Origin: Octopus sinensis
Taxonomy: Eukaryota
Length of the DNA stretch: 64,000 nt
Direction: 5' to 3'
Assembly: GCF_006345805.1 (NCBI RefSeq)
Contig: NC_043020.1
Location: forward strand, 27,218,001 to 27,282,000
Numbering within the stretch: position 1 is the first letter of the stretch; each line of letters begins with the position of its first letter. Below are positions 45,617 to 58,910 of the stretch, one piece after another. The position numbers and the translations under genes are program-made. The notes beneath the pieces are model-generated. The model was not told where the DNA came from and made no database searches. It saw only the letters and a program-made list of their open reading frames with translations.

Positions 45617-48600
45617 TCAGCAGCAGAGAGTTCCACCGTCAACCATATGTAGTGACCCAGTTGTGGAGTTAGCTTTGTCGCTCAGGAGAAATATTATGGA
45701 ATGCACAACATCTTCCACTTCTGAAAATATAAGAAAGGAAAGGAAAGTTAGAAAGAAATACTTTGATATCGCAATTCTTTCTATTATAAGCATAAGGCCT
45801 GATGTTTGGGGGAGGGGGTGGGCTAGTCGATTACATCGATCCCCAGTATGCAACTGGTACTGAATTTATCGACTCCAAAAAGATGAAAGGTAAAGTCAAC
45901 CTTGGTGGAATTTGAACTCAGAATGTAGGAATGGGTGAAAGCATTTCATTCAACGGGCTAACAATTCTGCCAGCTTGCAGCTTGAACCCTTTCGGTACCA
46001 ACCCGGCTGAAACTGGCTCCGGCTCAGAGTACAAATGTCTTGTTTCTATAAGTTCTGAAGTAAAATCTTCCACCAAACTTAGTCACAATTTACATTCCTA
46101 ACACTAGCTGAATGATAACTAAGTTATTTTACTAAATTCTTTGATATATTTAAAATTAATTGAAAGAAACACAGAGCATCTCAACAGAAATATGGTGACA
46201 AAAGGGTTAAAATATATAATAGAGAAACGATTCTTAACCCTTTACTGTCTGAACGTGGTTGATGCCAGTGCAGTGTCATTGGCTCCCCGTGCCAGTGACA
46301 TGTAAAAAGCACCCACTACACTCAAATTGGCTGGCGTTAGGAAGGGCATTCAGCTGTAGAAACATTGCCAGATTCAGATTGGAGCCTGGTACAGCCTACT
46401 GGCTTGCCAGTCTCCAGTGAAACTGTCCAACCCATGCCAGCATGGAAAAAGGACGTTAAACAATGATGATGATACAAGTATGATAAATGATGATGATGAT
46501 ACAAGCTAGGATGATATTTTTTTCTTTTTCAGGATTCCAAACATTTATTAATTTAAAAATAAAAAATAAGCAGGAGTGGCTGTGTGGTAAGTAGCTTGCT
46601 TACCAACCACATGGTTCCGGGTTCAGTCCCACTGCATGACACCTTGGGCAAGTGTCTTCTACTATAGCTTCAGGCCGACCAAAGCCTTGTGAGTGGATTT
46701 GGTAGACGGAAACTGAAAAGAAGCCCGTCGTATATATGTATATATATATGTGTGTTTGTGTGTCTGTGTTTGTCTCCCTAGCATTGCTTGACAACCGATG
46801 CTGGTGTGTTTGTGTCCCCGATACTTAGCGGTTCGGCAAAAGAGACCGATAGAATAAGTACTGGGCTTACAAAAAGAATAAGTCCCGGGGTCGAGTTGCT
46901 CGACTAAAGGCGGTGCTCCAGCATGGCCGCAGTCAAATGACTGAAACAAGTAAAAGAGAGAGTAAAGAGTAAGCCCTATGGAGCAGATTTTATCAGAGAA
47001 AGAGTCCGAGCACATTTTATTAAATAGATTTTGCTATCGTATCAATAGAACGGAACTTCGAAATGGAAAGGATGTACTGAATTGTTGGGGCCGAATTGTC
47101 AGTACTGACCTGTCATGCATGGAATTGTCAGGGCGCTATATATATATATATATATATATATATGTGTGTGTATGTACCGTATTTGATGGCCTGTAAGATG
47201 CACCTTTTTTACCCCTCAAATGGCTTAAGAAACCCCCCTGCGTCCAATGCACTCAATGTAAGTTTAAAATTCGCCAATGGTATGTATTTTATAAAATGTG
47301 TGCTGCCATCTGTTGGTGAACAATTGCCTATGGTATGTTTATATGGAATGTGGATGCAATAATCGGTCACGATTGGATGGTTCGCTTATTTGTCACCGGC
47401 ACAGGTATCACAGCTGCAATTTCCATTGATCGACTTCGATTTTGGTTCTGCTTTCTGATATCTGATTTGATTTGATTTGATTTTCACTTGTCTCAACGGG
47501 TCTTCACAAGTGGAGTTTTGTGTCCCAAAAGGGAAAGGTATGTATAAGTCGACTGGCTACATACCAGGTAGAGGCCATGGGTTATGGTCTCACTAGTCCT
47601 GCTGGGTCTTCTCACGCACAGCATACTTCCATAGGTCTCGGTCTCTAGTCATTTCCTTGGTGAGACCTAAAGTTCGATGGTCGTGCTTCACCACCTCGTC
47701 CCAGGTTTTCCTGGGTCTACCTCTTCCACAGGTTCCCTCAACCGCTAGGGTGTGGCACTTTTGCACACACACACACACACACACACACACACACACACAC
47801 ACATATATATATAATAATAATATGAGGAAGTATTATTCCAAACTTACAGAGAAAAATTCAATTTAGAAATATCAAATTTCACAAAATATAATATATATAT
47901 ATATATATATATAAAATTTAGAAAAAAACCCACCTTTCATCAATTCAATAATGAAAAATTAAATTACACCATCTAGAAAATTACATATAGAAAGATTAAA
48001 TATAAGATAAAACATATAACCAAATATATACATTTTATTTACTATTTTGCACATTACTTAATCATCATTATATGTTTTATCTTATATTTAATCTTTCTAT
48101 AATATGTAATTTCCTAGATGGTGTAATTTAATTTTTCATTACTGAATTGATAAAAGGTGGTCTTTTTGACTAATTTATATATATAAATATATTTAATTAA
48201 AATCTTAGGGTAGCAAGAATATTCATTGAAAAATTCTTAGTTACCAGTGGTCTAGCGAGAAGGAAAAAATTAGTCAATAGACTACATATTATTCAGCGAA
48301 GAATACAGTGTACATTTAAACACAAAAGAGATACCCGAAGAATAGGATATCTGACTTGCTAGAAAGAGCAGTTAAAACTCCAAGCCACCAATTGTTGTAA
48401 TTCCGAAAGTGATTGGAAAATAAAGTAAAAGTAAAAATAAGTTAAAAGTTTTTATTTTTCAATCACTTTCTATAAGAAAACACCATCCGAGCGTGGCCAT
48501 CAGCCAGCCTCGTCTGGCACCTGTGTCGGTGGCACATAAAAAACACCATCCGAGCGTGGCCGTCTGCCAGCGTCGTTTGGCACCTGTGTCGGTGGCACAT

Positions 48601-49251
48601 AAAAAACACCATCCGAGCGTGGCCGTCTGCCAGCGTCGTCTGGCACCTGTGTCGGTGGCACATAAAATCACCCACTACACTCTCGGAGTGGTTGGCGTTA
48701 GGAAGGGCATCCAGCTGTAGAAACACTGCCAGATCTGACTGGCCTGGTGCAGCCTTCGGGCTTGCCAGACCCCAGTTGAACCGTCCAACCCATGCTAGCA
48801 TGGAAAGCGGACGTTAAACGATGATGATGATGAGATATATATATATATATATGTATATATATAATTTCGTAAGTGCTGAATGTGTTGGTTATTTTACAGA
48901 CATGAAAGCTGTAAAAACCATACCAAAACAGACAGTGAAGCCTGGTGCAGCCTTCTGCCTGGCCAGCACCCGTCGAACTGTCCAACACATGCCAGCATAG
49001 GAAGCAGACGTTACACGATGATGATGATGATGACACACAGACATCTAGATGGACATAGTTTAATGTCTGAAATCATTTAAAAGATTAATTAGTAAATGAG
49101 GAAATTTAAAAAAAAAAAAAGATTTCAACAAACCTGCGAATTTCTTCAATGGAATCCTGTCTAACATGGGAGCAGCTTTGATGGGATCAGTCCAATATTT
49201 GATCCCCATTTCTGTAAGCACAACTGTTGGGTTCACACAGTTGACTCGGAT
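45617..49251 (-). CDS. DCXR: DCXR-like SDR, exons 6-7 (C-terminal half) on the minus strand
   Basis: join(49251-49134, 45720-45617): [16 protein letters not shown]...[20 protein letters not shown]|[34 protein letters not shown]. Canonical splice sites and consistent phases. Confidence 0.9.
45987..46206. mobile_element. piggyBac-like MITE
   Basis: CCCTTT...AAAGGG ends; TTAA on the right, TGAA on the left. A similar TTAA-CCCTT start occurs at about 63883. Confidence 0.55.
46570..46960 (+). mobile_element. tRNA-derived SINE family A, ~400 bp (about 20 copies: ~440-601, 3236-3610, 17110-17460, 17500-17815, 30310-30670, 42236-42860, 44060-44320, 44563-44940, 49280-49685, 54265-54680, 55165-55565, 58252-58630, 59700-60088, 61184-61580)
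   Basis: Head GGAGTGGCTGTGTGGTAAGTAGC...GGTTCAGTCCCACTGCGTGGCACCTTGGGCAAGT; internal (TA/TG)n; tail ...CAGCATGGCCGCAGTCAAATGACTGAAACAAGTAAAAGAG. Confidence 0.9.
47930..48160. repeat. AT-rich fold-back inverted repeat (~90-bp arms)
   Basis: 47930-48019 versus 48068-48160. Confidence 0.85.
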
Positions 49252-58600: not shown

Positions 58601-58910
58601 GTCAAATTGACTGAAACAAGTAAAAAGAGAAAAAGAGAAAGAGTCTGTTTAAAATGAGATTTGGCTGTTATTTCTAGCAAGTCAAGTGATCACATATTTC
58701 CATTTTTGACTCGTTTACTAATTAGCTATTTTCATTTGGTTACAGATCGTTGTCAAAGGAATGCTAGCAGACAAAAGACATGGCTCCATCGTCAACATTT
58801 CCAGTCAAGCTTCTCTGATAGCATTAAAGAATCATGGAGTATATTCCTCCACTAAGGGTGCATTGGATGCTTTAACCAGATCTATGGCCCTTGAGCTGGG
58901 CCCTCACGGT
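52669..58910 (+). CDS. DCXR: DCXR-like SDR (L-xylulose/dicarbonyl reductase), exons 1-5; 1-bp deletion in exon 3
   Basis: join(52669-52720,54869-54966,55804-55957,56622-56664,58746-58910): [50 protein letters not shown]. Exon 3 needs one extra base (TTG G[G]C CCC ATT) to stay in frame. Confidence 0.9.

Follow-up and report, generated by a model that had tools for sequence, protein, structure and literature searches.

Genes that lie whole and antisense within an intron of another gene are a familiar arrangement, exemplified by OMG, EVI2A and EVI2B in intron 27b of NF1 and by many cases in Drosophila. Inverted-repeat duplications whose arms undergo gene conversion are also known, as in F8 (int22h) and FLNA/EMD. 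Here we analyse a 64-kb stretch of the Octopus sinensis genome (CM016882.1:27,218,001-27,282,000, matched at 100% identity; hereafter the window) that carries exons of DCXR, an L-xylulose reductase-like short-chain dehydrogenase/reductase (SDR) gene, on both strands. The initial annotation of the window took these exons for one gene whose halves lie on opposite strands. We conclude instead, with a confidence that approaches certainty, that the window holds parts of two complete DCXR paralogues, A and B, and that the whole of gene B lies inverted within intron 5 of gene A.

The locus resembles the NF1-type nested genes in that an entire guest gene sits antisense in one host intron and in that the layout is conserved between species. 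It differs from them because guest and host are paralogues, B being inverted relative to A, so that the host pre-mRNA holds its exons in reverse-complement form as well. As in F8 int22h and FLNA/EMD, the inverted arms are 90-99% identical and the 3' block bears a conversion signature; unlike in those systems, the octopus arms are short (blocks of 0.3-1.7 kb) and are interrupted by short interspersed elements (SINEs). With mod(mdg4), in which exons on opposite strands are joined by trans-splicing, the locus shares only the presence of phase-compatible exons on the two strands: the antisense 3' exons of mod(mdg4) have no cis partner, whereas here every exon has a partner on its own strand. We do not consider this a new type of system; the architecture, with a gene harbouring an inverted paralogue of itself within an intron, is mildly interesting.

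Nested layout of two DCXR paralogues

Exons were re-derived from the letters of the window and then mapped by tblastn and blastn on the O. sinensis locus (L001, 49.7 kb of CM016882.1, assembly GCA_006345805.1) and on that of O. vulgaris (L002, OX597837.1, assembly GCA_951406725.2); the loci of O. bimaculoides and Argonauta hians served as outgroups. Window positions 35617-64000 correspond to L001 49703-21320 (28,384 bp, 100% identical and gapless), and a window position w converts to 85320-w in L001. The O. sinensis assembly was built from PacBio reads with Hi-C, and that of O. vulgaris de novo from Nanopore (ONT) reads with Omni-C scaffolding (PMC10700109). Neither L001 nor L002 contains a single N. 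As the reference product we used the recorded 'L-xylulose reductase-like' protein (XP_029650570.1 in O. sinensis, CAI9739888.1 in O. vulgaris).

All seven exon blocks of the initial annotation are present at the positions that it gave (Table 1), five on the plus and two on the minus strand, with AG/GT borders and a phase 0 junction between exons 5 and 6 (LGPHG followed by IRVNCVNP). A tblastn search with octopus DCXR proteins found no further DCXR exons in the 64-kb window, in agreement with the earlier statement that plus-strand exons 6-7 and minus-strand exons 1-5 are lacking from it. However, the two halves do not make the single full-length SDR that had been proposed. Once joined, they give a coding sequence (CDS) of 734 nt, which is not a multiple of three, exon 3 being one C short. 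The best match of the joined protein is the recorded protein, at 96% identity, and all ten mismatches fall within exons 3-5, while exons 6-7 are identical to it. Since exons 3-5 differ from the recorded protein and exons 6-7 match it, the two halves belong to different genes: exons 6-7 to gene A, and exons 1-5 to gene B.

In the orientation of L001, the order of the locus is A exons 1-5 (+), B exons 7-6 (-), B exons 5-1 (-) and A exons 6-7 (+). The window runs in the reverse orientation, starting downstream of A and ending inside B intron 5, and because of these end points it holds only A exons 6-7 (-) and B exons 1-5 (+). The exons lacking from it lie close by. B exon 6 (window-equivalent 64418-64535) begins 418 bp beyond the window end, B exon 7 (65453-65556) follows at about 1.45 kb, and A exons 5 to 1 (66721-75319) are found 2.7-11.3 kb beyond. 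The B CDS (L001 19764-32651, minus strand) is wholly contained in A intron 5 (L001 18600-36068). Together, the 14 exons make up two full sets; their borders are AG/GT throughout, and their order is the same in O. sinensis and O. vulgaris.

Two paralogues with their missing halves beyond the window had been listed among the options of the initial annotation, and this is what the public record shows; the second exon set that it suggested looking for just outside is there, as B exons 6-7 and A exons 1-5. The observation that the two halves complement each other exactly has a real basis, in that B does lie within A intron 5, but the rest of the fit is due to chance, namely to the window ending in B intron 5. 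The 'one gene in two halves' is an artefact of the window edge. An apparent split gene in such a position calls for consulting the flanking sequence before an inversion or trans-splicing is proposed.

The public annotation already lists the two genes: that for the recorded protein spans about 29.7 kb in L001 and L002, with a second adh_short gene nested antisense inside it. Gene A codes for 244 aa in both species, as does B in O. vulgaris and, after bridging of a 1-nt gap, in O. sinensis. The coding sequences of A and B are distinguished by 19 nucleotide positions, so that the copies are not a haplotype or collapse artefact. Each gene would be expressed through ordinary cis-splicing on its own strand.

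Several observations weigh against this reading. B is frameshifted in the O. sinensis assembly and could, owing to this, be a very young pseudogene in that species. The exact B protein is absent from a collection of 15 billion proteins, and B is annotated in O. vulgaris with a product of no more than 178 aa (L002 20295-32203, minus strand); the latter is probably an incomplete gene model, as the seven intact exons code for 244 aa. Furthermore, the right junction of the inverted copy (J2) is confined no closer than window 50076-50435, an interval mostly filled by a 244-bp palindrome, which we count among these points as well. A literature search on xylulose reductase in octopus returned nothing relevant.

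The frameshift lies in exon 3, where O. sinensis B reads CAGCTCCTTGG at 55867-55877 and the other five copies read CAGCTC(C/A/T)CTTGG, one base longer. One C is missing at 55871-55872, in a run of C (CTCC instead of the CTCCC of the other copies), and the frame shifts after residue 73. Of the six aligned copies only O. sinensis B is affected; the site is intact in B of O. vulgaris and in A of both species. That the deletion is genuine and that B is a pseudogene in O. sinensis is a possibility we regard with some doubt. The deletion is present in the deposited sequence and no B-type protein is on record, but it falls within a homopolymer of C, in an assembly built on PacBio reads (PMC10700109), the rest of the B protein is 100% identical to the intact B of O. 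vulgaris with all four nucleotide differences synonymous, and the recorded gene position lists a 244-aa product, which would be possible only if the annotator had bridged the gap. Given the PacBio-based assembly, the otherwise conserved B protein and the recorded 244-aa product, we favour an assembly error over a genuine, very recent frameshift by about two to one. An exact look-up of the 80-aa product truncated by the frameshift gave no match in the protein collection, a result with no bearing on whether the frameshift is real.

Single-gene explanations and RNA-level consequences

The initial annotation had considered that a mis-oriented assembly segment might have artificially flipped a single gene in intron 5, and had pointed to the palindromes and the AT-rich sequence between the halves. 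At least one likely indel error, that of exon 3, is indeed present in this region. Nevertheless, two complete exon sets with 19 coding differences speak against a flipped single gene, as does the gapless sequence of L001, and the same order with a base-for-base identical left junction (J1) is found in the independent ONT-based O. vulgaris assembly. Because exon order and junction recur there, the arrangement is real and a misassembly is ruled out; we attach practically no probability to this explanation. The two palindromes, reported at about 50209 and at 51400-51960, both exist (50201-50444 and 51403-51951), but they are conserved in O. vulgaris and do not mark a misjoin, one of them (51403-51951) being a mobile foldback element with a copy elsewhere. 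The noisy AT-rich stretch noted at about 50440-50700 is likewise present (50435-50734), as an ordinary duplicated repeat and not as a fault of the assembly. The features that hinted at misassembly are ordinary repeats, conserved in O. vulgaris.

If a true inversion, whether fixed or polymorphic, had disrupted a lone DCXR gene, it would be expected to leave just what the window displays, exons 7-6 on the minus strand followed by exons 1-5 on the plus strand. We nonetheless find it hardly conceivable, as same-strand partners with intact splice sites lie just outside the window for both halves, completing a seven-exon set on each strand, and as both genes are under purifying selection between the species. 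Inter-strand trans-splicing of B exons 1-5 to A exons 6-7, after the manner of mod(mdg4), would be compatible with the phase of the junction, and the B pre-mRNA, being fully complementary to A intron 5, could tether the two RNAs. Such splicing is superfluous when each half has its cis partner nearby, and the only full-length protein on record is the cis product of A exons 1-5 and A exons 6-7. The exact chimeric protein (B exons 1-5 with A exons 6-7) is absent from the protein collection, a weak negative given that the B protein is absent too. We consider trans-splicing very improbable. For the reference haplotype, a gene broken by inversion is ruled out, and trans-splicing is not needed, because every half has same-strand partner exons.

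The nested pair of paralogues does make the locus self-complementary. Through B, a 90-100% identical inverted copy, every A pre-mRNA contains exons 1-5 and 6-7 in reverse-complement form too, with 100% complementarity for exons 1, 2 and 7 (52, 98 and 104 nt), and the blocks flanking the exons are 90-95% complementary between A and the inverted B. RNA editing by ADAR enzymes is pervasive in cephalopods, and the locus may be a natural source of double-stranded RNA in a heavily RNA-editing animal. If this mattered, the locus would represent a built-in double-stranded RNA, with autoregulation of the A/B pair through editing or small RNAs; tethered pre-mRNAs might undergo some trans-splicing from exon 5 to exon 6 and yield A/B chimeric enzymes; and recombination between the arms, the occurrence of which is evident from gene conversion, could flip the segment, turning B exons 1-5 and A exons 6-7 into a true cis gene in some haplotypes. 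We judge it unlikely that double-stranded RNA, ADAR or small-RNA effects, or arm-to-arm inversion, play a part here, and the prospect of a functionally self-complementary locus as a whole strikes us as slim.

Origin and divergence of the inverted copy

The initial annotation had proposed a synteny check in other octopus assemblies, and this proved informative: O. vulgaris has the same layout as O. sinensis, and O. bimaculoides has a single gene. The single gene of O. bimaculoides, like that of Argonauta hians, has seven exons and covers about 7 kb, and the ENTH-domain gene that follows it in O. bimaculoides also adjoins the locus in O. sinensis and O. vulgaris. As the nested layout occurs in O. 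vulgaris and O. sinensis and the single gene in O. bimaculoides and Argonauta, the inverted duplication is best placed in the O. vulgaris/sinensis lineage. It would have taken place after the split from O. bimaculoides and before that between O. vulgaris and O. sinensis, which are dated at about 34 and 2.5 million years ago, respectively (PMC10700109). The synonymous divergence (dS) between A and B is 0.018-0.036, compared with 0.024-0.030 between O. sinensis and O. vulgaris and about 0.21 to O. bimaculoides, which suggests that the duplication is recent. The locus offers a tidy case, datable to between about 34 and 2.5 million years ago, of an inverted whole-gene duplication in the gene's own intron.

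Intron 5 measures only about 540 bp in O. bimaculoides. With this species as the outgroup, B retains ancestral intron 5 in full, with later insertions adding about 5 kb, and A retains only its first ~90 bp and last ~110 bp, about 340 bp having been lost at the insertion. At J1, A intron 5 tracks the ancestral intron for 93 bp (ending in aagaaatcc) and then, after 2-3 bases, passes into a tRNA-like SINE head, beyond which lies inverted sequence from 1.06 kb downstream of the A stop codon. J1 lies at about position 27,284,629 of the record, and one SINE copy forms it exactly at the 5' end of the element. The copied block, introns included, extends from the SINE head 1.06 kb past the stop codon to at least ~2.2 kb upstream of the ATG; the AT-rich element at 50435-50734, which has a counterpart upstream of A in O. 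vulgaris, sets its upstream end.

A single event probably inserted the inverted copy into the gene's own intron, since no single inversion of a duplicate pair gives the observed order. We rejected, on this ground, a tandem, convergent or divergent duplicate followed by one inversion, none of which yields the order P Q' P' Q. Retrotransposition or 3' transduction from the J1 SINE head was also discarded; the insert is at least 14 kb long and lacks a target-site duplication, and A has lost about 340 bp of the ancestral intron. A replication template switch or microhomology-mediated repair would be the most plausible cause, considering the 2-3-bp junction and the deletion of the target.

Human DCXR (1PR9) aligns without gaps over residues 1-244 (E=7.8e-85), so that residue numbers transfer directly. 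The TGAGRGIG motif at residues 13-20, which spans B exons 1 and 2, is aligned to TGAGKGIG of 1PR9, NNAA is found at residues 83-86, and S136, Y149 and K153 are in register with the human protein; from established knowledge of SDRs, we take Ser136, Tyr149 and Lys153 to be the catalytic residues. The Pfam list of the recorded protein includes PF00106 (adh_short) and PF13561. By motif, catalytic triad and full-length similarity, A and B are classical SDRs of the DCXR subfamily. They share with human DCXR (1PR9, 1WNT and 3D3W) the length of 244 aa, TGAGRGIG, NNAA and the Ser, Tyr and Lys at the same positions. O. vulgaris and O. sinensis differ from human in having two copies, and L-xylulose/diacetyl reductase activity is a prediction for either octopus copy. 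The seven-exon structure is common to all octopod copies.

Orthologues differ only synonymously, at 5 nt for A and 4 nt for B, with no amino acid change in either. Between A and B, the 19 nucleotide differences cause 14 amino acid changes (dN/dS ~1.2-1.5); ten of these are derived in A and a single one in B, the other three being ambiguous. Changes in A lie beside Ser136 (Q137E, A138V, L140R and I141M) and beside Tyr149 (S150C and S151C). The corresponding motifs are SSEVSRM and YCCTK in A, and SSQASLI and YSSTK in B and the outgroups. The residues that tell the copies apart fall within 89-151 (exons 3-5) and 190-198 (exon 6), A-type exon 6 being marked by Y190, I195, K196 and A198. It appears that B kept the ancestral protein and that A changed the neighbourhood of its active site.

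Divergence is unevenly distributed along the two arms. A and B are identical in exons 1 and 7 and, in O. sinensis, also in exon 2. Within a species, divergence between the arms of the 3' block is 0.9-1.1%, compared with 2.0-2.1% between orthologues. In intron 1, divergence between arms and between orthologues is roughly equal; in introns 2 and 6, the orthologues are closer. We read this mosaic as a sign that, since speciation too, the inverted arms have kept exchanging sequence by gene conversion near the ends of the unit, with the middle having diverged. The locus makes a modest case study of duplicate-gene evolution, combining conversion at the ends with changes of the host copy beside the catalytic Ser136 and Tyr149.

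Repeats and neighbouring genes

Table 1. Features of the DCXR locus, in window coordinates unless L001 is given.
Feature	Position	Strand	Remarks
Gene B exon 1	52669-52720	+	ATG, GT donor; L001 32651-32600
Gene B exon 2	54869-54966	+	AG/GT borders
Gene B exon 3	55804-55957	+	154 nt instead of 155, one C short
Gene B exon 4	56622-56664	+	AG/GT borders
Gene B exon 5	58746-58910	+	AG/GT borders
Gene B intron 5, first 5.09 kb of 5.5 kb	58911-64000	+	full of SINE and other repeat insertions
Gene A exon 6	49251-49134	-	AG/GT borders; L001 36069-36186 (+); 100% identical to residues 172-210 of the recorded protein
Gene A exon 7	45720-45617	-	AG acceptor, TGA stop included; L001 39600-39703 (+); last exon of A
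Gene A exons 1-5	L001 10001-18599	+	AG/GT borders
Gene B exon 7	L001 19867-19764	-	AG/GT borders
Gene B exon 6	L001 20902-20785	-	AG/GT borders
Gene B exons 5 to 1	L001 26574 to 32651	-	AG/GT borders
3' flanks compared	L001 39704-40360 vs 19100-19763, and L002 equivalents		divergence within species ~1%, between orthologues ~2%
3' block of A	44561-46182	-	end of intron 6, exon 7 and ~1.06 kb downstream; ends at SINE head
SINE copy	44561-44940		within 3' block of A
Last 3.4 kb of A intron 5, 5' flank of B	49252-52668		contains J2
SINE	49279-49678		inserted after the duplication
~400 bp common to B intron 5	49678-50076
Palindrome, 244 bp	50201-50444		arms 50201-50319 and 50326-50444, 119 nt, 96% complementary, 6-nt spacer
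AT-rich (TA)n element	50435-50734		part of duplicated upstream region; 83-91% to L002 8588-9049, upstream of A
Degenerate Pif1-like helicase ORF fragments	50858-51471	-	Pfam Pif1_2B E=1.8e-4, below gathering score
Foldback/MITE-like element, ~550 bp	51403-51951		207-nt core arms, 96%, plus 41-nt outer arms
GA-rich tract	between foldback element and 52431
238 bp homologous to proximal upstream region of A	52431-52668
ORF, open reading frame; MITE, miniature inverted-repeat transposable element.

The 3' block of A matches L001 18690-20314 at 95.1%, this being the inverted copy at the 3' end of B, outside the window. The last 3.4 kb of A intron 5, which form the 5' flank of B, are conserved in O. 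vulgaris at 94-95%. No second copy of the 244-bp palindrome was found in the loci examined, except for the orthologous copy in L002. The foldback element has arms of about 270 nt overall that are 89-96% complementary. An extra copy, 92.6% identical, lies in B intron 5 of O. vulgaris (L002 23059-23339); since it is missing there in O. sinensis, the element is mobile and has moved recently. When the ORFs between the genes were scanned against Pfam, the sub-threshold Pif1_2B match was the only one; these Pif1-like ORFs are absent from the matching region upstream of A in O. vulgaris and are probably the remnant of a Helitron.

The SINE family is about 400 bp long; its head resembles a tRNA (ggagtggctgtgtggtaagtagcttg...ggttccgggttcagtcc), and a (TA)n/(TG)n tract lies in its interior. 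It has 21 matches in the window, at least nine of them in and around the two DCXR genes (44561-61578). ARAGORN, run on the SINE heads, called no tRNA.

An ENTH/TVHS-like (tepsin-like) gene of 555 aa at 35617-43617 (+) converges on the 3' end of A; the same neighbour is found in O. vulgaris and O. bimaculoides, and the synteny is therefore anchored. Elsewhere in the window, long ORFs at 733-1521 (-) and 9439-10347 (-) show WSC-like cysteine patterns (...GCF...C..C...YAG...G..C.C...), the second also carrying a long KAEKAEK repeat; both may belong, as exons, to a secreted or repeat protein. Remains of long interspersed elements, with reverse-transcriptase ORFs and a C-terminal zinc-finger ORF, lie at 11120-11872 (+) and 13901-16172 (-). 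A repeat upstream of A (L001 420-4288) shares 82-86% identity with window 13878-16001.

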